DNA from: Pavona decussata
Lineage: Eukaryota
Length of the DNA: 64,000 bases
Direction: 5' to 3'
NCBI GenBank assembly: GCA_977016875.1
Contig: CDRNST010000205.1
Span: 62,001 to 126,000, forward strand
The notes under the pieces are model-generated. The model was given only the letters and a program-made list of their open reading frames with translations. It searched no databases and was not told the DNA's origin. The translations under genes and the position numbers were made by a program. Shown piece after piece: positions 8,754 through 64,000 of the stretch. Each line of letters opens with the position of its first letter. Positions within the stretch are counted from its first letter, which is position 1.

Positions 8754-11700
8754 TTAATCTTCGTCACTATCGTCGTTCCGCACGGCGCCTTTCGTTGCAT
8801 CACGTGCGTGTTTCCGCGCGAGATATCTCTCTTTTGCCGACATGACAGTTTCGCCCGTGCTGCGTTTTGCAAACTTGCTAACAGTCTCTTCGTTCAATTT
8901 TTCTTTAGCGTCTTTACTTTCTCGCACAACCTCTGTACTGTTGTCTTCATTCTTTTTTGTTGCGTCTTTCTTTTCATGATCCCGCTCTCCGCGGTGATCA
9001 CGTTTCCTGTCTCTTTCTCTACGATCATCGTGACTTGTTCGGCTACGATCCGAGTGCCGATGATCGTCGTGGCTTGATCGATGTCTCTCAGAGGGACTTG
9101 AACGTCTACGATGTTCTGTATCCTCGTGGTCTCTTTCGCTTTGCCGTCTGCGTTCCTTGTTGGGAGAATGTGATGATCGTCTCCGTTGTTCCTCATCACC
9201 CTCGCTGTCTCTTCGTTTCCGACTGGTATGTTCGTGATGTCTCGGATGTCGAGGTGAACTCTTCGTGTGTCTTCGGTCTTCGTGTGTTTCCTCCTCGTTT
9301 CTTGAATGCCTTCTGTCGTCTTTAAGGTTTTCACGTTTTCCGTCGTCACGGGTTTCTTGAGCATCCTTCGATTTATTCTCTTTACTGTCCTCATCTTCTT
9401 TGTCTCTGTTTGTTTTTGCTGCATCGTCCGCGGTGAAAGATCCTCCCAGTGAAACGTTTTGATTTAAAAGATTCCGATAAAATAAACTCAAGTCCTTCTG
9501 TTTCGTCACGTCATTGGCAGCTGAAAAATACGCAAAAAGAACATTAATTTAAATGAAAAGGTTTATACATTTGCACTGCCCTAAACAGCATATTTTTCTT
9601 CAGTTTTCGAAAATCGATGTTCTTTTTACATTACTTCCCATCATGTACAGAAAAGACTATAACCTTCCGAATCTTTTTCTTTCGGGAAAAATGAACGTTA
9701 AAATCCGGCGTCCATCATCGTTCCCAGGCTGCGTAACTTATTAAACGTCACGTGACAATAGCCTACGTGACAGCCAAAGGGGAAGTCACGCACGGGCGAA
9801 GCGCGAGCTCGCGCGTCGCGCGCGCCCCGGGCCGATTCCCCTTCTCCTTTCTAGCGCCTGCCACGCAGACTATCGGACAATTGTTCTTTGTCAAAAGGTG
9901 TTGAAATCGATACAGAAGTTGGACATTGGCTAAGACTCGAGAAGACTTGGACCTCACGTAAAAATTGGCCTTCTTTCTTTTCACGGCACAATTCAACGCT
10001 AAGACATTCAATACCTAATATAAACTTTAAAACTTTTTTAAAAATTATTATTATAAATTTTTAAAACGTTTAGACGTTACTTCACGTCATTATCAAGTCA
10101 AAAGTAGGAATGGCAAGTGGAAATATACAGATAATAAAACAATAAATTTTTTAAAAGGTTTTCAAAAGTTGTAACGTTTTTCTTCTGTATTTAGGAACGT
10201 CTTAGCGTTGAATTTTGCCCAAAAATGCTATCAAAATCTCTTTTTTTTTTCTTTTGTTTAGAAACTTTTTCTAGTGTATCAACGTACGATGTGCTCAGTC
10301 TCCTTTGGAGCTTTGACATGATTCAACGGGTCGCCATGGTAAAACGCTGCGTAATAACCGGAGCGTGTTAGCCTGTTGCAGCCTCTCGGATAGTAAAACC
10401 AGCGAAACGCTAAAAATATGAAAGGAACGTGAAAATTAAACGCGCACGTTCAATTTTTGCGTTCGCTTTTAAATTCATTAACCTATCGCCGTAGCCTAGA
10501 TCAGGTACTGGTTCTTCATGTTCTTCTACAACAATTCCTAAAGTATCCCTTATTCCCCAAAATCCTCTCAGTACACATGTGAGTAAAATAACAACTGACC
10601 ATCAATGGCCTCTTGTCGTTTGAGTCTCTCTTCCTCCTCAGCTTGTTCTTGCATTTTCTTGCGGTATCTGGTGTACATTAGTTAAGGTGTCTTTAAATAA
10701 TCAAGCTTCAACTGAAACTTCCAGACAGTGTTATTTACCAGTGAATAGAACCACACGAAAGCGACAGAAATGAACACTCCGCCATCGGTATATAGAGCCA
10801 CCTGCCACACTTGGGCGGCAAACAAACTGGACCTCCCCCCTCCTCCTTCTGAATGGAATGCTAGTCATGCTAGTGCCACCCCTAAGCAAGTGCTGTCTTT
10901 GCTCTGACATTAACCTGCGATTATACCTTCCCTCCCTACCCCTAAAAAATAAAAGACGCCTAATCACTGGTTACTCTCACTGACAGGAATTTAAAGGGTC
11001 ACAGTATTAGTTTTACTAGAGGTGCCCCTCTTCTCTCTTCCTCCTATTTGAAATGTATTTTTCAACTGCGTGTTATTCTATGTTTTTTAATCCTCCAATT
11101 TTTGTATTTTGCGGTTATGTAACAGTAAGAGTAGAGAGTATAAATTTAAAAAAAAGTCAAAAAATTGTCACTGACATCTGCAAATGGTTAGACTTTCTAG
11201 TCTTCTCGGATAAGGACGAAAACCGGTAGGCCACTTTCACGGATCACCGTTGTGGGACTAAAAAGAACCACTAAGAACCTATGAATCTCTGGCACTGACC
11301 ACCACGAGGGGGCTTTTTCAAGTTCGTTCATTCGCTTTATCCTGTTTCGCAATGTTCAATTAAAAGGAGTGGGACTAACAAATGGACTGATAGCAGCAGC
11401 CATCGGCGCCTGTATAAGCTGATCTACGGTCCTATTTCCTAGAAAGAATGTAAAACGGACACGTCTGTTGCCCGTTCGTCCAGGATCATCATCATCACAA
11501 ACACCAGTTTGTGGTTCAATGTGTGTGGGATTTTTTAACATAACTGTAATCCTAATTTAAGGTCCGTTTGCTAGATTCACATTTGGGGAATGACAACTGT
11601 AATTATTAAATGAAGGATACGCTTCTGTAACGAAGGCTTCTTTATCATTAAATTCACCCTGCTCGTTCTCCCTTTCTTTCTGCACTTGCCGCTCTACAGT

Positions 11701-23485: not shown

Positions 23486-23645
23486 NNNNNNNNNNNNNNN
23501 NNNNNNNNNNNNNNNNNNNNNNNNNNNNNNNNNNNNNNNNNNNNNNNNNNNNNNNNNNNNNNNNNNNNNNNNNNNNNNNNNNNNNNNNNNNNNNNNNNNN
23601 NNNNNNNNNNNNNNNNNNNNNNNNNNNNNNNNNNNNNNNNNNNNN
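23486..23645. other. Assembly gap (160 N)
   Basis: Run of N. Confidence 1.
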
Positions 23646-23929: not shown

Positions 23930-24127
23930 GGCTGCGTTGCGTAGTGGTTAGGGCGCCGGACTTGTTATCCGGAGGTCCCGGGTTCAAGTCCCGCTCTGAC
24001 CGCTTGGATTTGTTTCACGGTAGCTCCGTTTTCAAATCCAAGACCACGCTTTGTAAATAGCCAACTGGTTTGCTTCCCGCCTGTTGGGATTCTTAACAAA
24101 TGTTATGTTCTGTTTGTGTATTTATTT
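23930..24127 (+). mobile_element. tRNA-derived SINE
   Basis: A box-like GCGTAGTGGTTAGGGC and B box-like GGTTCAAGTCC, followed by a non-tRNA body and a tattt tail. Confidence 0.75.
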
Positions 24128-26159: not shown

Positions 26160-29100
26160 TACTCGAAAAAAGGATACCCGAGGGGCCCTAGTAAGTCGGT
26201 CGACTCTAACACATTCCGATTTATAGTTCGATGCTCTACAACAGGGCTACGTGTGATTAAATCTGATGGTGTACTGTAATCCTGGTGAATGAAAGGCAAT
26301 GATATATTATTCAGTGAAAGACATCAACACTGACGTATACTCAGAAACAGGATATCCGAGTCCACCTGTAAGATTTCGAACTGAAGCCCTTCCGATTACT
26401 CAGGACACTGTGCTACACTCAGAAACAGGATATCCGAATCCTCCTATGAGGAATCGCACTTAAGCCCCTCCGATTACCTGTTCGGAAGCTCCACCAAAGA
26501 GCTACATATGACTAAATCTGATGGTATACCATAATCCTGGTGAATGAATAGCAATGATATATTATTCAGTGAAAGACATCCACACTGACCTATACTCGGA
26601 AAAAGGATATCCGAGTTCACCTGTATGGAGAGCACCAAAAGCCCTCCCGATTACTGACACAGAGGAACACTCGGAAATAGGATATCCGAGCCCTCCTATA
26701 AGGAGTCGAACAGAAGCCCTTCACATTACTGACACTGAGCAACACCCGAAAACAGGATATCCGAGTCCTCCTATATAAGGAATACAAATAAAGCCCCTCA
26801 GATTACTGACAATGAGCAACACTCGGAAATAGGATATCCGAGTCCTCTTTATAAGGAGTCGACCACAAGCCCTTCCGATTACCGACACTGACCAACACTC
26901 GGAAATAGGATGTCCAAGTCCTCCTATAAGGGATCGAACAGAAGCCCTTCACATTACTGACACTGAGCAACACTCGGAAACAGGATATCCGAGTTCTCCT
27001 ATATAAGAAATACAACTAAAGCCCTTCCGATTACTGACTCTGAGGAACACTCGGAAATAGGATATCCGAGTCCTCTTTCTAAGGAGTCGAACAGAAGCCC
27101 TTCAGATTACTGACACTGAGCAATACTCCGAAACAGGATATCTGAGTCCTCCTATAAGGAGTGGAAAAAAAGCCCTTCCGATTACTGACATGGACCAACA
27201 CTCCGAAACAGGTCATCCGAGTCCTCCTATACGGAGTCGAACAGAAGCCATTCCGATTACTGACACTGAGCAACACTCGGAAACAGGATATCCGAGTCCA
27301 CTTTAGAAGGAGTCGAAAAAAAGCCCTTCCGATTACTGACACGAAACAACACTCGGAAATAGGGTATCCGAGTCCTTCTATAAGAAGTCGTAAAAAAGCC
27401 CTTCAGATTACTGACACGAAGCAACCCTCGGAAATAGAATATCCGAGTCCTCCTATAAGGAGTCGAAAAAAGCCCTTCCTCTTACTGACAGGGAGCAACA
27501 CTTGGAAATAGAATATCCGAGTCCTCCTATCAGGAGTCAAAAAAAGCCATTCCGATTACTGACACGCAGCAACACTTGGAAATAGAATAACCGAGTCCTC
27601 CTATAAGGAGTCGAAAAAAAGTCCTTCCTATTACAGACACGGAGCAACACTTGGAAATAAGATATCCGAGTCCTCCTATAAGGAGTCGAGAAAAAGCCCT
27701 TGCGATTACTGACACGAAGGAACACTCGGAAGTAGGATATCCCTCTTACTGAAACGGAGCAACACTTGGAATTAGAATATCCGAGTCCTGCTATAAGGAG
27801 TCGAAAAAAGCCCTTCCGATTACTGACACGAAGCAACACTCAGAAATAGGATTTCCGAGTCCTCCTAGAAGGAGTCCAAAAGAAGCTCTTCCGATTATTG
27901 AAACGGAGCAACACTTTGAAATGGGATATCCGAGTCCTCCTATAAGGAGTCGAAAAAAAGCCCGTCCAATTACTGACACGGAGCAACACTTGGAAATAGG
28001 ATATCTGAGTCCTCCTATAAGGAGTGGAAAAAAGGCCTTTGCGATGGGTAGTTCGGACGCCAGTTTACAATTCAGCTACATGTGTTTAGATCTCATGGTA
28101 TACTTTAATCCTGGTGATTAAATGGCAATGATGTATTATTATTCAGCAAAATGACACTGAGATATAGGTTGAAGCGGAATATCCAAGTCCTCCTATGTGT
28201 TTAAATCTGATGATATACTAGATCCTGGTTAATGAATGAGAATAATGTGTTATTCAATGAAATGACACTGAGCTATACTCGGAAACAAGATAACCGCGAG
28301 CCCTCCTATAAGGAGTCTAACCTAAGCACTTCCAATTACTAATCCACATGCTTTACCACAGAGGTACATGTGATTAAATCTGATGTTTTTCTGTAATCCC
28401 GATGAATGAATGAGAATGAACTGTTCTTGGAATCAGAATATCCGAGTCCTTCTTTGAGGAGTCGAATTTAAGCCCATCCGACTACTTGTTCGGATACTCT
28501 ACCACAGAGCTCCATATCATTAAATCGTATAATTTAATCCTGGTGAATGATGTATTGTTCAGTGAATGACACTGAGCTATACTCGAAAATCCTCCTATGA
28601 GGATTCGAACCTAAGACCTTCCGATTACTAGTTCGGATGCTTTACTACTGAGCCACAAGAGACGTGTGGGAGCAAAAGGACATGATACTTCGTAGGTTCA
28701 TGGGACAAACCCCCTGCATACTGCTTGGTTTTGAATATTTTAAGCCTGGTGATTGAATGAGAATAATGTATTCTTTAGCGAATAATGTCCCTGAGGCACT
28801 TTCGGTAAAAGAAAATCCGAGTGCTCCTATGAGGAGTTGAACCTAAGACGATTACTAGTTCGGATGCTCTACCACAGAGCTAAATGTGAGTAAAGGTGAT
28901 GGTTTTCCATAAGCCTTGTGAATGAATGAAAATGATGTATTTATTCAGTGAAAGAGACTGAGGCATACTCTGAAAGAGAACATCTGAGTCCTCCTATGAG
29001 AAATGGAGCCGATTTCTACGTTGAAATTCTCTACTACTGAGCTATACAGGAGACGCGCAGGAGCTAAGGCTATTAAACTACTGTAGTAAAAGTTGGACAA

Positions 29101-50860: not shown

Positions 50861-52961
50861 AAAAATTGCGAAGAGGAAAATGTTCTTAATTAGACTAAAA
50901 ATAAAAATAAAAAATAAAAAAACCTCGAAAGTCATTTGGATGCTCTGAAAATAGAGTTCTGTCATTTAGATCAGGTATCACGACACAGTCGCGTCACAGA
51001 AAGCGAAAAGTATCTTTATACATTTCCTTTTCATTTTGAATTTGTTTTCGCGTTTTACACTTTTGCGAGATGAGTTTTGTGACTCTTTAACGATACAAGG
51101 TAATAACGCACAGGAAACCTAAATGAAAGACTTGTCATGGATACAGGATCATCAAGACGAACGTGACGTCAATATTTGCGATTTCATGGCAATTATTCAC
51201 ACATTAAAGACATTAAACACTCAAACTTCCTTCGTCATAACTTAAGGATTTCGCATTATTCACACACATAAAAAAATTAAAAAAAATTCTTTTTCCTCGC
51301 ACCGGTTATGAAAATGTAGTTACTTTTCTTTTCATATTTTTTTCAGGCTTAATGTTCCCTAAAACGTACCGATGTAACCCTTGTGGTGGTCATATTAGGG
51401 TCCAGCACCATAAGCGGAACTAAGCTACTTATTTTGACCCCTAAAAGGTACAGGCTACCACCCCCGTTATATTGATATAGAATTCTTTTCTCTACCCATT
51501 CACCCACCCAGTCCCCGGGAAATGAGGACCGCCCCTTCCCCTGCAAGGTTATTTAAGGGTGGAGCGCCTATTGTAGTAAGCAATCGGCGCTAGACAAATG
51601 CGGCAACGGTCAGATCAACCCGGAGTGTCCATGAAAAATTTTAACTTTCACTGAAACTTTTTTGAGCCTTTTCGACAAAATATAAAGTATATATAATTAA
51701 ATACAAAACAATTTTAAGACAATTTGACTATAATATTTACACACCTATAACTTTTATCAAGGTCGTTCCTTTGGTTACTCTGATCTGCAACCGAAAAGAC
51801 GCCTAATAAATTGCAAGACCCAGAAAAAACAACGTGAAGGTATGATGGCCTTGTTTGTTTGAATCGCAGGGATGTGTAGTCAGCGCAGTCCACACAGCAC
51901 TTTCCATTTGTTTTAACTAGTTCTATCTAAGGTTTCACGATTGTACTCCAAGAGACAAATCTGTAGACATTGTAGCTAGACATGCTGGAGGCTTCTAATA
52001 ACCTGTTTTTATCTTAACAGCTACTGATTCCACTTCCACAAGGGAACTATTCGCCCATTGTTTTGAAAGAGGCAAACAAATATTCTTCAATAACAAGTTA
52101 TTTTTAGGACACTCAAAGTCTGAACCGGAATTCATTTGCCACAAAACACCAAAAACATGTAAATCTTCACGTCATCCAAGAGATGAATTTGTCTGCCGAA
52201 AGAGTACTTAAAATTGAGTGCAGGAAGGTCTTTAGTCTTTTGACGTTCTTTTAGCTTGTTTTTGAGTTTTGTCTCAAAGTCCTTTTAATATGACGTAGTT
52301 TCAAACGATCGAAATTAAATGATCAGATACTACAGCTCAAAAACTAAAGCTAGTGTCAGCACTTCTATAATTGCCCAACCTGTACGCCAATTTTAATTTC
52401 ATCACAAAGTAAGCTGTAAAACACTTACTGAGGAAGCGGTAAATTACGAAGCAGCAGATGGATATCACCAACAGGATCTTGAGCTAGATGTGTTCTCTGC
52501 CGATGCTAAAGTATAGAAAATTGACGGGTAATTTTAACTGTCTGCACATTATTTATCACAGAACCACCTGTATGTAAATTAAACTGAATTACTTGGTCAA
52601 AGGTCAGTCCATGAAACAAACAGCTTTATTGGTTCTGTTCGTAAAACCACTTCACTGATACATTACATGACAATAACGGATTTTCGTCATAACCAGCCTT
52701 CCTAATTCCATGGTATATTTAGCTTTCTTTCCAGCCTGTGCTTGAAATAGTTTGCTGAAATCTTTAAAAGGAATTAATTTTGATTTCGCCCCCACAAACA
52801 GACAAAATGGTTTCCTGATTCACCAGCCTTCCGCTAGCTATTTAGTGGCATGAAACACGTCACACGAGTGGGCTTTTCAATCAAGAGTTATAAGAAGCTG
52901 TCGTTTGCAATCTTGTGTCATTTATCCTTTGTTTCGTTCAGCGTCAGCTTCAAGAAGCACG

Positions 52962-53915
52962 ATGAAAAGTCTGGTCCTGTTTCTTCTCCAAGCATCGCTG
53001 TTGTATTTCCTTATCACAGTCCACAGCACAGAAGGGCAGCTATCTTGGAATTCTTTTAGAATTAGAGGAAGATCGTTTAACAATGTAAGTATAGAAGAAA
53101 CAGTATTTCTAAGCTTGACTTGGGAATCAAGAAGTCTGAACTGAATCAAAACCAACCGCTCACCCCAACAGAATGCTCCGAACGAAAGCGCAAAGTAAGA
53201 AATACGCCTCAATGGTACTCATCCGAGAGAACAGAGTATATTTATACGTTTATATTTTCCTCCCGGAGAGCAAAGGTGTGCCGGATTGTGTTTTAATTTT
53301 TGAGTGGATGTGGAGAAAACCCAAACACAACAACAACAACTAGCATAATTTACTGGGTGTCTTGATCAAAACCAGGCCAACTTTAATGTCTAAGTTTCTG
53401 GAATGAGTACAGTATATGAATAGCCCTCTTCAGCCACCGAGTTCTTTAAGGGCAAACATTTTTGGCGCGAAATCAAGTTTTTCTGTGGTAAAAATCCAAT
53501 TTCAAATAATTTCCGACCTGATTTTCGACCAGTTCTGTCAACACCGCATTCAAATTCTGATGTTGTAGATATCTTGAGTTGATAAGCCGTAAATAAACTA
53601 ATCAGAAATCCATGTTTGCCGAAATATTTTGTCGACAAATAACCGTAAAGTTTGCACCTATTATCATATTTTAATTCATAATTCTTTGTTAAGAAAAAGG
53701 TTTTGTTGATACTACGACTTCCTCAGAGAAATAAAAGGCACTATGATTGTAAAATTTTCACGCTAATTCAGTGGGCTTTTTCCTAGGGACACGCTAAGAA
53801 AATTGCTTTGAATCACAATGCAAGAATGGAAGGGTATGAAAGCAGACAGTTGGAAACAAATCACCTCACACGACGTAAGGATGGAGCACGCCAGAAAGTT
53901 TCGCATTATACCTAA
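52962..53915 (+). CDS. Putative amidated pyroGlu peptide precursor B (83 aa, 2 coding exons)
   Basis: Exon 52962-53084: MKSLVLFLLQASLLYFLITVHSTEG|QLSWNSFRIR-G-R-SFNN, donor GTAAGT. Exon 53787-53915 after ctttttcctAG: GHAKKIALNHNARMEGYESRQLETNHLTRRKDGARQKVSHYT*. AATAAA at 54058. Confidence 0.75.
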
Positions 53916-55646
53916 GCCTTGGAAATAACAACTCAAGAATACTAAAAACAGTGAGATTGAGATATTTTATGTTGATCTAATGAACAAAAGACGACAACTG
54001 GTATCGTTGTATCTTCATTATAATTAAACATTGTAACATCAAAACATTAAAACATTAAATAAAAGTCAAATATTTGACTCGTTTGTTTGCCTCACAATTT
54101 CCCTTTACAGAAAAAAAAAATCACATCAATTATCTGTCGCTTCCTTCAGCCAACTGCAAATAGGCCCAAAAAAGGTAATTACACCGGCTGAGGCCATGCT
54201 GTTCTGATGGCTTTCAAAACACCACAGATTTCTTGTATACAATTCCAGAGAAATGCACTGGTGTATTGTGTGTCAATACGTGCCGATATCGATTACGACA
54301 ATCGACGTGAAGACCACGTTTAACAAGACAAACCAAGCGCTGCCCGCCAACGATCTTTCGTTTGATTGCTGGTCTGGATACAATTTAGCAGTTCCCATAT
54401 ATTTTTACAATTTGGAAATACAGGATGCTAGGCAATTGTAGCTGTTTGCTTGATTGTGTCACCAGAAGTTTGTTTAAGGTAGGAAAAGCAGGACATTATG
54501 AGAAGAGGTCTTATTGATGTTTATATAACAGTATGAAAAGCAGACAAAACCATCAGTAATCAGTTTGTATTCATAGTAATTACTTGCGTGTCGGTATTAT
54601 GATTTATTACACGATTGAGGCAGTCAGATGACCAATAACTAAAATCAACCATTCAGATCGCTCTAATTACGTCATATTAAGAAATGAATTCCATTACCAG
54701 AAAGATCATATAATCAAGTTTGGTTATGTTTTACCCCAAAGTAACCAGACGCCCAAACTCCATACAAAATGTCTTTAAAACTGAGATGGCGTCCCCCCAA
54801 ATCCATGCAAAGTATCCAATTTTTCCGATTTTTGAAATCCTTCTATTGTACATGGTTGCAATCTAACAACATAACCTCAGACTTGATAAACTGACTAGTT
54901 CTAATGCGATTTTTCTTGTGATGAACTCCAATTTCTTATTACAGTAAATGGACATTTAAAAACTGGTCCCTAGTCTCCATTTAACTTCGGTGGGCGCAAA
55001 TTTCCTTTTTTGTACGGAACTCGCGACATTCGGTTCATACTGTCAAGACTTCGACCCCATAGTCTCCCAGTTATGTGGCGATCTGCAATTTCCTGTTTTT
55101 GTAGCTGCGCATGTGCGTGACGTTAGCAGACTGACAGCCCGATTAAATTTGTTGACATTGAAGTTCAATATAAGGGTGTACTTCCTTTCAACTATCTTCG
55201 CTCTTTCATACTAAGTCGGTCAACGTCACTTTGGTAGGACGCTCAACGAATCACCTCTGCCCAAAGTTTTTGTGGAAAACCTTACTTCTCTAAAATTGGG
55301 ATATTTAAAAATTTAATTTCTGACGACAACTAAAGTTTTCCTCCGATTAAATGACTCCATAAACTTTCATAACACCGGAAATTAATTTATTTTGTTTTTA
55401 GGAGCCAAAACATTGTTTGCAATACAAAGTAAGGCTGAACATGATTGTCGAAACTTAACAGCAGCTCGAAAAGTCGGGCAAGATTTTCTCCCCTACGGAA
55501 ATGTAAAATTTTCGGCAAACAAACCAAGCTGTATTAGTTCACACAAAAACATCACCATAAAAGCTCCCAAAAACGATACGGGAATAGGAAAAAATCCCGA
55601 ACCTTTAAGTAATTTTATCGGTCGGGTAAGCCCTGATTTTTGTGGA

Positions 55647-56027
55647 GGGGCTGTTTGCATGGGGGGAGGAAGATCCTAAAAGACGGATCATCCTAGCGCC
55701 ATATGTTTTCTGTAATCAATTTACATGCAAAAAATTGTACTTGGCCCTAGCGCTAGGATCTTTCTAGCTATAGGATCTTCCCTACTGGGAGACAGGAAGA
55801 TCTTAACCCCATGTAAAATACCTTCGCTCGGAAGGTCCCAGTTTCATGACTAGGAACAAAAACAAACATGGCGGCGACGGCACGTTCAGCTGCTAAAGGC
55901 CGACAATTTTTCTACTCTTTCTTCTCCACGTGGTGACCACCCCAACCGAAATTTCTGCATGTAATATAAGCTAAACGAAAAGTTGTTTCGCCTTCAAGGA
56001 TCTTTCTCCCTCCATGTAAAAAGGGCC
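55647..56027. mobile_element. MITE-like element with imperfect TIRs
   Basis: GGGGCTGTTTGCATGGGGGGAGGAAGATCCT ... AGGATCTTTCTCCCTCCATGTAAAAAGGGCC. Confidence 0.6.
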
Positions 56028-59000
56028 TACGTGCCAGATGCCACATGTGGATTGAGTTCACTTCGTGCCTTGCTCCAGTGATGTGGTATCTGTGTATTTG
56101 TCGGTTAACCTCGCCGCATAAAAGCAATCAGTACTAAACTGCAATTAAACTCGACCCGGAATCAAGCTTGCCAGTCGCAAGGGCGTTTCGATAGATTCGG
56201 TAGATTTAATATTGTTCATGCTAATTAATATATTTTTAAGACTTCTTAAACGAAAAAACTAGAACTTCAGTTGACGATTTCATTGTCGAGCGAATTATAA
56301 AATTTGGGACCTTGAAAAAGACAAAATTTGTTTATGTTAGTTTGACAACTGATGTTTGCATCTGACGTCATGGCAGCCATGTTGGTGGACAGGAACAATA
56401 AGATTTTTCTCCTCTGGGAGTTCACTACCATTTTTACGCAAACGTTGTGAACAAATTTTCTTTGGTTTTGTCAACCAACATGGCGGCAATGCAAACCTGT
56501 CCACCTTTAGGGTACGCAGAAGGCATACAAGTTTCTAGAATTGTAAGTGCGGTTTGGTTGCTTTGAAGGAGATTGTTATATATACCTTGATGTCAAGGGT
56601 GAGTTTTTGCAAGAATACATGCTTTGACCAAGTTGTAGCAAGTGGATGTCATTGAATGTTAATTTCATCTTGTGATATCGGATTTTATTCCTTTGAAAAC
56701 TAAATAAGTCATAATTATGCAAAGTATTAAAATATTTAGAAAAAACACATTGACAATGATAACCTCAAAATTACTCATAGTTATCAGTTACAACAGTTTT
56801 GAAATTTTTGATTGCAAAAAAAATTGCCAGCAATAAGAAAAGGCGTTACAAAACGACCGCAAAATCTGGCCTACACAGAATAAAATGATGCGTATCGTCC
56901 AAAGGCCTTTTAATTAATTACTTAATAAGACAATTGCACCTCCAACACAAAGGTTCGCCAACACAGTACATCGCCAAAGGCGTAGACCCGGCGAAATCAA
57001 TCAAGTTTCATATAATGTGGTAGCTTGTGGTCTTGAGACCATTGTGGCTGATAACCGTTATCAGTTTTTTGTATGAGCGTGGGTCGCGGGGCGCTGAGGC
57101 AAAAAGAAAAACAATGAATAATCGGAATTGTGAGAGCCTGTATCATTGATATTCTCCACGACTTTCAGTTACTTAAAAAGATGCTTGCAGACGACAGAAT
57201 CGAATGAATAAAACCTAAGATACCCGGCCAAAGGATAATGGAAATGATTGGGAAGAGAAACATTTTTGCCATATATGATCTAATGACTTTCACCCTCACG
57301 ATCTGACGAAGGCTCGAGGAAGTTGGGCACCTTTTGCTTTTATTCGCGCTTAAATCAACTTTCACATTGCTTTAATTGTGCCAATTGCAATGCATGTGGG
57401 CGCTTAATTAAGTTGAACAGTAGTCTTCAAGCAGAAATAAGACCCAATAATGTTCAGAAAAAAAAATTGATCTAGGTTGATGGATTTAATTATTAAAGCA
57501 AACAGATGACTGGAAAACCTTTATAGAAGTGACTATTAAAGTATTTCAGTTTTGAAGTGGAGCATAAAATCGCCCCGAATATACGGATTTAGATTTTGTG
57601 ATGAAAAAAAAAAGAGATTTCTTTAATGAAGCTTCACCTCTCTTACTTTCATACTATAGAAAATGAAAAAACATAAAACGAAATTTTTAGTATTTTGCCA
57701 AATTTCCTTGTAGCATGGGCGATGTTTTAGCCTATATTGCATTGTATAATTTTCTTTTCCGATACTGTATTGTATTGTAATTTTCTTTTCGTTTTTCTGC
57801 TTTTGAAAGTCTTGATGTTTTAATCTTTTTGTTCCCGCCCGACTCGATTAGCTTCGCTACTTTCGGGTGGGAATTGTACTGTACTTCAACTGTTTGTTAA
57901 TATTATAATAAATGATTGATTGAAAATGAAATGATTGATTTTAGCGATGGCGTAGTCAAGAGCGCGCGCCTGCCGTACACGTGTTCTGTGTTCAATATAA
58001 CACGCCAGATGCCGTATGTGGGGTTGCGTTTGTTGTTGTCTCTTGCTTCAGTGGTGTCTCATCTGCTTTGTCGGTTAAATTTCCTCTCAAAAATAATCAA
58101 TTCTAAATTAAAATTAAATTCATTCCGGCCAGAGAGCCGCAGTTGAGGCCTTTTCGTGATAGCCATCAATGCTTCATATACTGCAACTAAAGGCTATTGA
58201 CGTTACAATCATCAAAACTGTATCTCGTGCTATTTCTTGTGTTGAATGAGTGATTATTCTGAACAACGAAACATTAATAATCTTGATAACCCATTGATAG
58301 CCTTAAAATAACTCTTTGGATGGGCGATGGGAAGGTGAGCACTTTTGGTACCTGCGGCACCCGAACGTGGGCATGAGAAAGCTGGGTGCCTGCTGTCCAA
58401 ATATGCGATAAAATAAAACTTTGTGTCACATCCCGACCCTTTCCCACCAAACAACAATCTGTTGCAATATATGAGGCCGCATAATGGCCCACGTTTACCA
58501 ATGTTGACCAAGGAAATTTCCACGCTAAAACAATCTTCAGGAAAGAACGCTGGAACCAACGAAAAATCCTCATTTATTTAATTCAACTCAGCTAGCGGCC
58601 GAGTGATTTAAATGAGTAAAGATTTTAAAAACACTTACAAAGATGTCAGTTTGTGCTGCTACAATAGGCCTTAGCTACCTTTGTTCAACGTTTTCAAGGT
58701 AATATGTGATTCCTGAAATTATGTTGAAATAAACATATTAAATCTTCCTCGCCGAAACATTTTATTGTCATACCCAAAAATACCTCGGAAAATGGCCTTA
58801 AATGATTTCGGTATATACCTAACTGCGTGGGTAGTGTTTTTTCGCGCTCTCTGATTGGATAGTGAATATCGCATGTATTTGCTATGATTGTTGTAAACTG
58901 TTAAGGAGAAAAAAGAAACTAAGAACAAAGTATATTTAGGTGCAGAAAATCTTGCACTTTACCACATCGTTTATAGGCATACGAAGGTGTAATCTGCTGT

Positions 59001-59175
59001 TTAGTAATAGAACTACGGTGATTTCTACATTGTTTTATTTATCACAATGCAAGTTGCCAGTGTTTTTTTTTTGTTTTGTTTTAAAAAAAAGTTGTCCGAT
59101 TCCAGTGCAAACTTCTGTCCCAAAGTCCGCAACGTCTTTAAATTGTCTCCAACGGAACCGGGGCTAACGTTACTA

Positions 59176-59544
59176 AGGGCGCGTCCATTTCGGACTATTC
59201 TGGAATAGGAATACTCAGAATAGACGGTATTTGTGTTCTTTTGGGAGCTATTCCGTTTTCGGAACGAACGGAATATCATTCTGTTCATTCTGCTCCCGAT
59301 AGCAGAATGAACAGAATGGAAGGAATACGGTACGGTTTACTCGGAATAGACAGAATACGCGTTCCTTTGGAAAATTTTACGCAGCCGCTCGCGCGCGCAG
59401 ACATAGTAATCTCCTAGGACACCTCCGCCATGGCTATTTCGTTTCCAGATTTTAGGAGCGTTCTTTTCGAAATTGAAATTCCGTGTATTCTGTTATTCCT
59501 AAACCGCAGTAAGAATAACTAAAATAGCCCCAAAAGAATGTACC
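59176..59544. mobile_element. Harbinger-like MITE (TAA flanks)
   Basis: TAA-GGGCGCGTCC ... GAATGTACCC-TAA, with ggaata/tattcc repeats. Confidence 0.45.
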
Positions 59545-60374
59545 CTAAACTTGACCAAAGAGACAATTTAAAAACCTACACGAGCTTCAGAGAAACATTT
59601 TTTTCTGTCATGTCGTCCCTATACTGAAGACATTGATTTTTTTACTCCAGAAAACATCAGATAACTGAATTTTATTTCCGTGTGTACAAGCTGCTACTGA
59701 CCATCAGGCTAGGATAGTAGCTTTCCGAAAATCTTTTCTGACCTGTCGTTTTTGTTCCCGAAGAAGATATTTTTATCTATTTGAAAACAAAACATTTTCA
59801 TTAACTTTCTTTATACTATGGAAGTAAAAGGTGACATTTAATCAAAGAAAACTCTAGTTTTTCACCGCAAAAGTCTAAATCCGGACATCTGAGACGACTG
59901 AGGCGGCTAAGAACAGAAATGTTATTGAAACGATCGATTACTTTCCCCTGATAATTACCTTACAACTGTTTATTCACTGAAGTGGGGGTGGCAAGTTGTG
60001 GATCACTATTCATTTACACTCGGGTGAATAAAAAAAAAATACACTGAACCAGTGGATAACCAGCGCGGAATAGAGGACAATGCTGGAAGATGAATAGGTG
60101 ATATGTTACAACAGCCATTCAATATTTATGTCTATGACTTCTTTTAAAAATAAGTGGCACATTTCACGGATCTCAGTAATTACATGCAAGGCTGCTAATG
60201 TACCATTAGTGAGCTTATCGAGAGAGTGGTTGAGATTGTTCTTTGAATTGAAAGTGACAAACGCGAAGAAACATTCTTCATGTTCTTAATTAATTAGCGT
60301 GTGTAAAGAGACAGAAAAACAGAGTCTTTGTTTTTGATTTTGCAGTCTCGTGTCAGCTGCTAGAGGGACTCAGG

Positions 60375-61363
60375 ATGAGAAGGTTTGGCTTGTTGTTTTT
60401 TCAAGCGATCTTTCTTGGCTTCCTCGTCGTTACTCCCCGTAACCGAGGCACAGAGGGACAACTATCGCTAGGTAAACCGCCTCCTACACAAAACGTAGGA
60501 CGAGGGATACACCCTGATTATCATCATAAAGTAAGTATATTACACAGCTTTCTTGTAAAATTATTATTTTTTTTTTTTGCTTCTTGTATGTTTTAACGTA
60601 AATTCCGAATATTAGCCGATATTAATAAATCCCAGAGCTAAAATCATTTGTTCAAACGGAGATCTTATCTTTTAGGCGCTTGTTTTCGGTGAGGAGCCGG
60701 TGTAATATTATTGAAAGGGGGAATTTTTGCGTTTCAAAATGGGCGTTATAAAAGAGACCGTTAATTAATACAGCTTGAATTACAAAGCTAATGGTCTAAA
60801 ACAACTAACCCTCAAAGAAACTTTTGAATGCAGGGGACCACACGTCGCACAAATAAACTGTTCTGAATGTTTCTCGTTGCCGGATCTCTTGTAGTAGAAA
60901 TTCACGTGTCAGACGTCACACTACGGCAAAGAAGACTACAGGTACTAGTTGAAAAATTGGCCCAAATAAGATTGTCCGTTGCCGTAGTGTCCTCACAGTC
61001 CATAGGCTAATATTCATAAGTCATATATCGAGTAGCATTTGGGAGGCTTACTTTGACTCGGGTCGCTAATGAATTTAACACCTGGCTTTGGTGTTGTATA
61101 TAAACTCAGGCTGGTGTTTTATTTTGTGCCTGCACGAGAAGAAAGTGGAGGATGGTTGTCTGAGCCTTCAGAGCGTACGAGACTCGGTGGTGATGTCAAG
61201 CGAGTGAGAGTTGCCGCTCCAAAGATTATCAACACCAACAATAACACTACTAAAAATATTTTATTATAATTATCATTATTATTGTGATTATTATTATATA
61301 TAAGATATACTAATGTAATTGCGAGTGATTTTCTCTCTCAACATCCGAGTCCAACCCATGGAC

Positions 61364-61420
<57 letters not shown>

Positions 61421-61817
61421 TTATTATTATAATCTATTTTCACATCATTGCACAATTTAACTAAATTACGATGTGTCCACAAGTAAATAACGATTTATAT
61501 AAAAATATTTGGGAAAAATACAGTGAGTCTAAGACTACATAGTTTAACTTAAACTTCAAAATTAAAAAAAAATAATGTGTAAATAGAAAAACATCATCAT
61601 TATTACCATCATTATCATCATCATCATCATTATCACTATCATTCTTATTGTCGCTATTACTAATTGCCCGTCATTTATATAGCAGCGTTACACAAGAAAG
61701 AAAACTGGTCAACAGGATGGTCATCAGAAGGAAGACCTACGCCGTGAAGAGAGAAATCAAGCGATGAGAAGAAGTCATATGAAGCTGACTAAGAAGTTTC
61801 GCTTTCCTTTTATCTAA
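60375..61817 (+). CDS. Putative amidated pyroGlu peptide precursor C (96 aa, 2 coding exons)
   Basis: Exon 60375-60530: MRRFGLLFFQAIFLGFLVVTPRNRGTEG|QLSLGKPPPTQNV-G-R-GIHPDYHHK, donor GTAAGT; upstream acceptor ttttgattttgcAG at 60345. Exon 61683-61817 (NAGNAG acceptor): QRYTRKKTGQQDGHQKEDLRREERNQAMRRSHMKLTKKFRFPFI*. AATAAA at 61826 and 61919. Confidence 0.72.
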
Positions 61818-64000
61818 CCCTTGGCAATAAAAACGCTTACCTGAGCCGATAACGCAATTTAGAAACTGTACTTGCATAATGGACAAACTCGACAAAAGGC
61901 AGACCATGTATAATTAGCAATAAAATACTGTGATTCTTCAACCTTTTGCTGGTTTTATCAGCTAGACACGATTTCGCTCTTTTTCACTTCCCAGCAACAA
62001 TCAGCGCTGTCTTGAAACATAATTGTTACTAGATTATACCTGCTTATTATTTTTGGTAGTTTGTCACCGCTTGGGGTGATTACACTGCAGTCCAGTTAAA
62101 TCGAATCCTATGTGGACCAGGAAAAAGGTTTGGGATAACGAAGTCGGTGTCAAATTAAAAATAAATTAACCAACCATGCTTGTAACTATATCAATGTAAT
62201 AAAACCTGCTATACTAATTACATGCGTACTGTATCAAGTCTTTCCTAGATGGACGAAGAGGCTAAATTTTTTCTCTCTTTGCAGTGACCAATGACATACA
62301 CCTGTATGTGATACAGAATAAGCTAACGTATTTACAAGACAATACAATTGATTTCTCAATGAATATGAATATATGAAGCATATATTTGAACTTCGCGTGA
62401 AAGATTTAATAGAGGAAAGACCCTCGCAGTTATTTACGTTACTAAAAAAGGCGAGGAAAGAAAGCCGCAAAAAAATATGCAATGCAGATGCGAAATGAAA
62501 ATTGAAATGCTGAAGTCTGTCGTAGTGATTTAGGAAAAGAGATGGGAAGCGGGGCCGAGGAGGAGGGTGGGTTTGAAAATTGTGCGTAGCTATAAAAATA
62601 TCCTCGCTAAGCCCCTGCCTTGGAGGTGATTATAATTAATTAAAATGAACCATCGAAATATATCGGCGGTATCAACTGCTAGGTTTATTCTGCCATGATC
62701 TTTGATTTTGAGTGCTGAGATTATTATACTTTTGTGGGTGAGTGCGATGGTTTTTAGTCAAGCAATCTTTACATTTGCACTGAGCTCGTGGAATTTCTTA
62801 TCAGAAACCCCAAATCGACTACAGTCGATGGTAATCTAAGGAATTTTGTCAGGTAAGATCACGGGTGTACCGATACTAACAGGCTCGAAACCCTAACGTA
62901 CCTGAATTCCGCAAACTATGTTTATTTCGTTCCTAAATCTTCTTGTTTGTGCCAGCTAAAATAGAAATAAATCATATTCTGTTTCTGATCAATCAGGGCA
63001 AAACACACCCTTTCCCCCACCAACATCGATCAAAATAATTGCCTTACTTTTCGGCGCGAAGGTTAAAAAATACAAAATTAAGCCATGATCTTTGGAGCTG
63101 TACGAATACACCTGACTGGAGACTACATGGATTGACTAGCAAATTAATAACCCGCAAAAAAAAAAAAAAAAAAATAGGGTGACCACACTTGAGTGCTAGT
63201 TTGGTTGCTAAGCTTGTTAGTTATTAATACAATTCATTGCGAAATTGTGTGATTCGCTATAAAAAAGTTTAGTATAAGGAAATGTACCTTTATATTGTAA
63301 GTTTGAGGAAGCTTCTTTTGAAAAAAAAAATGATCGTGAATCTGCAGGATTTAAAAAATAAATAGGCTTCTAGCTGGCTCGGAGTCCTTTTCCACTGAAG
63401 TAGTCAAGCGGCTCTCCATACGAGAAAGCGGGAAAAAACCGAATTGGAGCCACTCTCTTAGCTCTACTGCTCGACTCTAAGAAATAAACTGTAAAATACA
63501 AAAAAAAAAAGCTGAATAAATCTAGTCTCATTCAATTATTTTGTAAGAACCATACTGTTTATTTCCAAAGGTTAACCTCTTAGCCGTTTTTTAATATAAG
63601 GCTGAAGGATTGTCGCAGAGACATTGCCAAACCTTTCACAAGCGCGCTCGCTGAATTCCCAAAAATGTTTTTTAAAACATAGAGAAACGAACAGTATACT
63701 GCTGAAGAACTTAGATTCGTCTGCACAGTCACAATTTAAAGTTTCATCCAATGAACAACTTGTATAACGTGATAAAGAATTAAAAGCAAAATCAAGCGTT
63801 TGTGCGTCGGTTACGTAAAAAAAATACTTTCTTCTCAACAGAAAGCTCCAGTATCAGTGTATAGCACGATAAAACACCACAGAACAGCACCGTCCGTCTG
63901 TCAGTTTTTATCAGTGAGTGGGCACACTGGTCTGACACTTCGCTAGCAGCCCTGCATGACTGATTATTCCCCGTAGGCAGTTCAATGCACAATAATGAGC

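Follow-up and report, generated by a model that had tools for sequence, protein, structure and literature searches.

Does a short gene of the coral Pavona decussata encode the precursor of a single secreted, amidated peptide, and which part of that peptide is under constraint? The question concerns a stretch of 64,000 nucleotides (nt) of contig CDRNST010000205.1, hereafter the window, which belongs to an assembly of 602 Mb in 1180 contigs with 38% G+C. Few coral neuropeptides are known, most of them through repeated peptide copies, and single-copy precursors are easily missed. A preliminary description of the window had singled out the decapeptide QLSWNSFRIR followed by Gly-Arg at 53037-53072, and both the coordinates and the letters are exact: on the forward strand, 53037-53066 encode QLSWNSFRIR and 53067-53072 encode Gly-Arg, in frame with an ATG at 52962. 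We refer to the gene that holds this candidate peptide as gene B, and to the paralogues that flank it on the same contig as genes A and C. Our reading, which we put forward tentatively, is that gene B encodes a lineage-restricted, prohormone-like precursor from which an N-terminal pyroglutamate (pGlu) peptide would be released at the Gly-Arg site.

Gene B encodes a predicted signal peptide followed by a Gln-initiated peptide

Coding exon 1 of gene B (52962-53084, +) comprises 41 codons, ends in phase 0 and has the same length, start and end in two orthologous loci, the closer L006 and the more distant L021. It opens with a predicted signal peptide of 25 residues (52962-53036, +) that ends ...HSTEG. 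The leader has an n-region MK, a hydrophobic core whose Kyte-Doolittle mean reaches at most 2.2 over 12 residues, and small residues before the predicted cleavage point (Thr at -3, Gly at -1); by this rule-based check gene B has the signal peptide of the hexacoral preprohormone class, and the feature is conserved in the orthologues as well. Directly behind the signal peptide lies the predicted peptide QLSWNSFRIR (53037-53066, +), and behind it Gly-Arg (53067-53072, +), a putative amidation donor with a single basic cleavage site, for which both orthologues have G-R-R one codon earlier. Four codons, encoding SFNN, separate Gly-Arg from the end of the exon, where a consensus GTAAGT donor follows at 53085 in phase 0. 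Joined to a second coding exon, the gene model (52962-53084 plus 53787-53915) spans 83 codons, and its product would be short, cysteine-free and basic, with net charges of +3 and +5 in the post-signal parts encoded by exons 1 and 2, respectively.

Promoter-like elements precede this frame. A TATA-like box, TATAAGA (52889-52895, +), stands about 70 nt upstream of the start codon; it is kept in L006, aligns with TATAAAA in L021 and is colinear with TATAAAAA in paralogue A. Further upstream, the conserved promoter motif CACGAGTGGGC (52863-52873, +) is identical in L006, and L021 carries the motif at a matching distance from its TATA box.

In the processing that we propose, signal peptidase would cut after ...STEG and leave Gln at the new N-terminus, a prohormone convertase would cut after the Arg that follows Gly, and a carboxypeptidase together with the amidating enzyme would generate the C-terminal amide, with cyclisation of the N-terminal Gln. 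The predicted products would be pGlu-LSWNSFRIR-amide in the window and the 9-mers pGlu-LSWNSIRM-amide in L006 and pGlu-LSWTPIKT-amide in L021.

Two orthologues indicate a real gene with a constrained first exon

The closer orthologue was reached through P0001, a prokaryote-style read-through open reading frame (ORF) on an ENA metagenome contig, which was the only protein retrieved by exon 1 within its 96-residue open frame. L006, the locus of P0001, is colinear with positions 51011-62745 of the window, and 8.1% of the aligned sites differ. L021 came from a scan of JGI metagenomes and shows 56% identity; when its exon 1 was searched back against this genome, gene B was the sole match (expectation value E 2.2e-7). 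The TATA box, the start codon, a length of exactly 41 codons and the GTAAGT donor are common to the window, L006 and L021. DNA similarity between L021 and gene B ends 7 nt beyond the donor, past which the read-through tails show no relationship, and this argues for a true exon boundary; a read through the donor, which would give a 60-residue single-exon protein, was rejected on the same grounds.

Across this distance exon 1 shows a nonsynonymous divergence (dN) of 0.26 and a synonymous divergence (dS) of 1.30 against L021, giving a dN/dS of about 0.20. As a positive control we used the single-copy preprohormone gene for Antho-RWamide-2 in this genome (G000:C123:4547339-4547533, corresponding to L019:1423-1617), which was located by the degenerate pattern QGLRWG[KR]. 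Its frame contains a signal peptide followed by ...PASS|QGLRWGR; the 65 codons of this exon are bounded by an acceptor just upstream of the ATG and by a phase-1 donor. In the protein collection, its precursor has its nearest named relative in the stony coral Oculina patagonica, and the presence of this gene places the genome among the hexacorals, very likely the Scleractinia. Compared with the same metagenome species (Ga0126336), the control exon gave a dN of 0.19, a dS of 1.21 and a dN/dS of 0.16. By these values the long-range constraint on exon 1 of gene B is about equal to that on an exon of a bona fide neuropeptide precursor. Taken as they align, the shared promoter, frame and splice signals indicate that gene B is a real, TATA-driven gene with two coding exons and more than a chance frame.

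On another contig, a coding string for QGFRWGRI followed by a stop is present in two copies 3.4 kb apart on the minus strand (G000:C45:940678-940697 and 944135-944154; L016 and L017). Both strings are directly preceded by an in-frame stop, and they may represent either a repeat or the short last exon of two paired RWamide-like genes.

Constraint falls on the N-terminus and the Gly-Arg pair of the predicted peptide

After STEG, the three gene B orthologues read QLSW NSFRIR G R SFNN in the window, QLSW NSIRM G RR SFNN in L006 and QLSW TPIKT G RR SLHN in L021. STEG|QLSW is thus invariant among them, and residues 5-10 of the peptide are variable; the wider pattern [TV]EG|QL[ST] holds without exception in the six sequences examined (the three gene B orthologues with paralogues A and C), and Gln stands directly after ...EG in every orthologue and every paralogue, three of each.

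Gly followed by Arg is likewise found in all three gene B orthologues (RGR, GRR and GRR), even though two adjacent codons have been swapped. Codons 35-37 read AGA GGA AGA in the window, GGA CGA AGA in L006 and GGG AGA AGA in L021. Since both relatives have G-R-R, this would be the ancestral state and R-G-R the derived one: in the window lineage, neighbouring codons each changed at their first position, so that Gly and Arg traded places and a Gly-Arg pair was preserved. The swap is suggestive of selection for an amidation and cleavage signal, although it is a single event. We infer that the ancestral peptide was a 9-mer in front of G-R-R and that the Arg-ending 10-mer arose only in the window lineage. 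On these alignments the constrained part of gene B would be the N-terminal pGlu-Leu-Ser-Trp together with the amidation site, and not the C-terminal residues of the peptide.

The preliminary description had named a lack of conservation of Gly-Arg among orthologues as evidence that would count against the peptide, and the pair is present in all three. It had also expected the peptide to be better conserved than its flanks, and here the data point the other way: in-column identity to L021 is 5/12 over the peptide and its site versus 16/25 over the signal peptide, and between the window and L006 the 36 nt of peptide and Gly-Arg carry five substitutions (13.9%), four of them nonsynonymous within five codons, versus a background of 8.1%. 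What holds of the decapeptide is therefore its setting, namely the conserved exon, the signal peptide, the Gln at the cleavage point and the Gly-basic site; its ten-residue length and its -IRamide end are confined to the window lineage. As the decapeptide is specific to this lineage, targets for synthesis and mass spectrometry should add the orthologous 9-mers and the non-amidated forms.

Gene B shows signs of relaxed constraint in the window lineage

Intron 1 of gene B (53085-53786, +) begins with the GTAAGT donor, contains a branch-like CTAAT at about 53763 and ends in the acceptor TTTTTCCTAG, which, with its pyrimidine tract at 53786/53787, aligns in the window, L006 and L021. Read from this conserved acceptor, coding exon 2 (53787-53915, +) comprises 42 codons and a TAA stop; the phase-0 frame runs for 42 codons to its stop in both the window and L006, against 43 in L021, and the stop codons are aligned. 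The protein, in contrast to the DNA frame boundaries, does not follow: the phase-0 frame of the window and L006 is 9% identical to L021 exon 2, versus 36% for the +1 frame, and it is the latter that holds the ...HARKF... C-terminal region of the family. In the window and L006 a TGA at 53809-53811 interrupts this +1 frame, which also lacks a plausible acceptor. Relative to L021, exon 2 has indels of about +4 nt and -7 nt that jointly restore the aligned stop, and by this alignment exon 2 of gene B carries a compensated frameshift common to the window and L006. Alternative terminal exons of gene B (at 53442, 53694 and others) were rejected, their acceptors or frames being absent from L021.

In L021, exon 2 (L021:3930-4058; the window's 53787-53915 was compared with L021:3930-4061) reads ...PRKR, a 12-residue stretch, GKR and a 13-residue C-terminal peptide ending FIRFPLI. 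This copy could thus yield a further amidated peptide as well as one from the C-terminus; the sites for both are lost from the window's frame. The best-conserved DNA stretch of exon 2, GCACGCCAGAAAGTT, is identical in the three species, although the frame in which it is read here differs from that in L021 and gene C; this conservation at the DNA level is independent of frame.

Behind exon 2 lies a probable 3' untranslated region (UTR; 53916-54075, +) with ATTAAA signals at 54023, 54046 and 54054 and a predicted transcript end. It falls within a block (53485-54100) that is present in a single copy in the genome and that shows 3.8% substitutions against L006, versus the background of 8.1%. A repeat or a known RNA was ruled out as the nature of this block, given its single copy and an Rfam search that returned only a sub-threshold match to U1A_PIE (E 0.23). 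Two further stretches of intron 1 are well preserved. The first 76 nt (53085-53160) differ from L006 by one substitution (P about 0.01 at the 8.1% background), and positions 53499-53595 are conserved in the three species and alignable in L021 at 73% identity, with indels that exclude coding; the latter block may be a regulatory element.

Between the window and L006, the gene B coding sequence has 11 nonsynonymous and 4 synonymous differences, which is what neutrality predicts and marginally more than a dN/dS of 0.3 would give (P about 0.05; the numbers are small); in exon 2, all five of five differences are nonsynonymous in the frame used. We think it unlikely, though worth weighing, that gene B is drifting towards loss in the window species and its close relative, in which case the decapeptide would be functionless here and the older 9-mer might be functional elsewhere. 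The neutral-like counts fit such drift, as do a substitution rate in exon 1 equal to the background of 8.1%, the yet higher rate in the peptide, an exon 2 frame that is not the ancestral one and a dibasic site reduced to a single Arg. The counts are small, however, and both species retain an intact frame with its start codon, donor, acceptor and stop position; the indels of exon 2 together change its length by a multiple of three and so restore the aligned stop; and the promoter (5%) and the exon 2/UTR block are better conserved than the background. We therefore say of gene B that it shows signs of relaxed constraint in the window lineage. Together with the frameshifted exon 2, this makes it doubtful that the decapeptide deserves to be called the cleanest ligand candidate of the cluster, as it had been in the preliminary description.

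Genes A, B and C form a tandem family restricted to one locus

Upstream of gene B, coding exon 1 of paralogue A (44709-44852, +; 48 codons) encodes a signal peptide followed by QLTFNYK..., without a Gly-basic site, and ends in a GTGAGG donor in phase 0. Its promoter and exon 1 show a colinear, weak similarity to gene B (tblastx E 0.014). Downstream, coding exon 1 of paralogue C (60375-60530, +; 52 codons) encodes a signal peptide and QLSLGKPPPTQNV-G-R... and ends in a GTAAGT donor, again in phase 0; coding exon 2 (61686-61817, +; 43 codons and TAA) ends ...KKFRFPFI and has 2.3% substitutions against L006. The net charges of the parts encoded by the two exons of gene C are +2 and +9. Exon 2 of gene C is 41% identical to that of L021, which ends ...RKFIRFPLI, and exon 2 of gene B is homologous in DNA to that of gene C at the 3' end (pairwise blastn E 1e-5), which argues for a true gene family. 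Strict blastn and tblastx comparisons gave no downstream exons shared by A, B and C; the paralogy is visible only with relaxed settings and by way of L021.

A pattern of Met, hydrophobic leader and [EG]GQ[LIVMF][ST] occurs at three sites only in both strands of the 149-kb contig, all on the forward strand and within 16 kb, and no further copies of the A, B or C exons were found elsewhere in the 602-Mb genome. Seen in this way, the three genes make up a genuine, locus-restricted tandem family of basic, cysteine-free precursors of about 80-95 residues. Within it, gene C looks more constrained than gene B by its substitutions.

Two observations on the paralogues stand beside these. In the gene C peptide QLSLGKPPPTQNV (60459-60503), a 9-nt in-frame deletion removes PTQ in L006, and the G-R-G that follows and the rest of the exon are unchanged. 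For gene A, a second exon may lie at 46943-47086, where a strong pyrimidine tract and a phase-0 acceptor precede a basic ORF of 47 codons that starts VHARK...; over the opening 15 nt this possible exon is similar to GCACGCCAGAAA, the conserved element in exon 2 of gene B (a weak match, E 4.3).

Secreted effector or hormone precursor

The composition of the family also permits a different interpretation, in which its members are small cationic secreted effectors, host-defence or antimicrobial-like or with another extracellular role, and no amidated decapeptide acts as a receptor ligand. This is possible, if on the unlikely side. The conserved Gln would then merely cap the protein, and G-R(R) would be a plain convertase site that frees the basic C-terminal part, or would stay uncut. 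The post-signal parts of genes B and C are indeed strongly basic, by the charges given above, and have no cysteine; the family is tandem, lineage-restricted and without another copy in the genome; the 'mature peptide' evolves fast and tolerates in-frame indels; and the C-terminal motif KF(x)RFP[LF]I, common to gene C and gene B of L021, suggests that the C-terminal part also matters. Taxon-restricted cationic peptide families of cnidarians behave in this manner, the arminins of Hydra being an example of such a secreted family. What speaks for the hormone-like precursor instead is that Gly precedes the basic residue or residues in every gene B orthologue despite codon turnover, a residue that simple cleavage does not need. 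Moreover, in the window lineage the C-terminal part has been frameshifted and exon 1 has been kept, which points to the N-terminal part as the one that matters more, and Pfam returned no similarity to a defence family. If the family were one of defence peptides or effectors, the window would hold, in a reef-building coral, a young locus for secreted peptides that evolves fast.

Several observations nevertheless weigh against a peptide hormone precursor. Beyond its first four residues the peptide is unconserved: its length is 10, 9 and 9 residues in the window, L006 and L021, and the amidated residue would be R, M and T. The conserved amidated C-terminus that belongs to the preprohormone class is thus absent, the ends being -FRIR, -SIRM and -PIKT, and the established cnidarian amidated neuropeptides are all defined by their C-termini (PMC7523074). 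The Antho-RWamide control, SQG[LI]RWGR, is by comparison essentially invariant over equal evolutionary distances: in 15 sequences whose overall identity falls as low as 63%, a lone exchange of Leu for Ile is seen. Furthermore, in the window species Gly is followed by a single basic residue, an amidation site is absent from paralogue A, the frameshift has removed the C-terminal motif of the family from exon 2 of gene B in the window lineage, and the coding differences from L006 are those expected under neutrality.

A last point on this side concerns expression. No transcript-derived or annotated gene B protein was found in word-indexed searches (22-72 and 53-168 residues) or in an exhaustive search of cluster representatives, versus 21 clusters for the RWamide control in the protein collection (from ENA, Logan, JGI and NCBI). 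We take this as weak evidence against expression, since open frames of this length are called erratically; the hits, for example, did not include the gene B frame of the window itself. The 41-residue exon 1 query of the protein collection gave no candidate; the exhaustive representative search again returned P0001, and the four repeat proteins that it gave besides were set aside as chance matches (e.g., the repeated SWESFRINGR in P0004). A Pfam search with the first exons of A, B and C gave no family for exon 1 up to E 10, apart from one meaningless match at E 0.19.

Other features of the window

Three Rfam matches to transfer RNA (tRNA) lie at 50700-50772 (-), 28590-28662 (-) and 23930-24002 (+), with 54.8, 39.3 and 31.2 bits, respectively, the first of them between genes A and B; these may be genuine tRNA genes or else repeats that derive from tRNAs. 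At 8754-9509 (-), a frame of 251 codons rich in Arg, Ser, Glu, Asp and His resembles the tail of an RS-type splicing factor and is probably an exon of an unrelated gene. Positions 23486-23645 are a run of 160 N, an assembly gap or a masked stretch.

Comparison with known peptide systems

The taxon-restricted cationic peptides of cnidarians are similar in general character: like them, the gene B family is small, secreted, cysteine-free, basic, fast-evolving, tandem and lineage-restricted. Compared by description, the arminins differ in that their N-terminal part is acidic and that they have no conserved pGlu start followed by a Gly-basic site.

With the bilaterian precursors of gonadotropin-releasing hormone (GnRH), adipokinetic hormone (AKH) and corazonin, gene B shares a signal peptide, a pGlu peptide within the range of 8-12 residues, a Gly-basic site and an associated peptide, as well as an aromatic residue near the N-terminus. 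The preliminary description had drawn its comparison with GnRH and AKH from this layout and the aromatic position 4, and we find it unsupported. True homology, with gene B as a cnidarian branch of the GnRH/AKH/corazonin superfamily, strikes us as extremely improbable. In its favour are the common layout, with a pGlu peptide of 9-10 residues, and the conserved Trp at position 4; QLSWTPIKT of L021 and QLTF... of paralogue A presumably resemble the starts of AKH peptides. A broader version, in which the three-gene locus represents an undescribed coral peptide-hormone family with an AKH-like N-terminal pharmacophore (pGlu-Leu-Ser/Thr-aromatic), as an ancient, diverged relative of GnRH and AKH or by convergence, is in our estimate very unlikely. 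Were it true, it might explain the GnRH-like immunoreactivity of anthozoans, of which there are old reports. The details of the peptides speak against kinship: the orthologues have Trp4, but at position 8 they carry R, R and K in place of the Trp8 of AKH, the GnRH pattern pQHWS...PG-amide is missing, and peptide length varies among orthologues. At the level of the precursor there is no detectable homology, Pfam finding neither family in exon 1, and the gene B family is found in close coral relatives only. The layout of pGlu peptide and Gly-basic site is present in gene B but does not discriminate, as unrelated hexacoral precursors have the identical layout (PMC7523074). Ligand sequences are in any case unreliable guides to kinship, for which receptor orthology is decisive (PMC9545775), and cnidarian and bilaterian peptidergic systems expanded independently, according to a large deorphanisation study (PMC11087051).

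The FHIRamide precursors, to which the -IRamide end had been likened, carry 4-10 copies of peptides of 14-19 residues that end in FHIR- or YHIR-amide (PMC7523074). Gene B is like them only in its Ile-Arg-amide end, and this in the window species only; it has a single copy of 9-10 residues without His, and its orthologues end in -IRM and -IKT, so that the resemblance fails in every feature that defines the family. By alignment, neither the 'GnRH length' nor the 'IRamide' feature carries comparative weight. Strings of the QLSW type and -RIRamide names were absent from the searchable texts of papers and from the supplements of PMC7523074.

The closest counterparts are the single-copy preprohormones of hexacorals, in which one peptide directly follows the signal sequence (Antho-RWamide, -RIamide, -KAamide and -RNamide; Koch and Grimmelikhuijzen 2020, PMC7523074). 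Among these, the RWamides have an N-terminal Gln that becomes pGlu, as in pQLLGIRWamide (PMC7523074). Gene B resembles the class in its short precursor, the peptide at the signal-cleavage site, the N-terminal Gln, the Gly followed by a basic residue and the presence of several paralogues per species; the signal peptide, the position of the peptide with its Gln and the Gly-basic site of this architecture are all found, and the conserved amidated end is not. Membership in the Antho-RWamides themselves was rejected, no gene B orthologue having RW before Gly. The two also differ in gene structure, the intron of gene B being in phase 0 four codons past the processing site and that of the RWamide gene in phase 1 after 65 codons, and in distribution, the gene B family having been found in near relatives only and the RWamide precursor in 21 clusters from many corals. 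Gene B has no sequence similarity to the known preprohormones, and its conservation is N-terminal, whereas the C-terminus defines each known family. If it is a signalling family, it would provide ligands confined to one coral lineage, with possible relevance to spawning, settlement or contraction, and an unusual case in which the N-terminus is constrained rather than the amidated C-terminus. By analogy with the hexacoral precursors, we propose gene B as a candidate additional preprohormone of the kind in which one peptide lies directly after the signal sequence.

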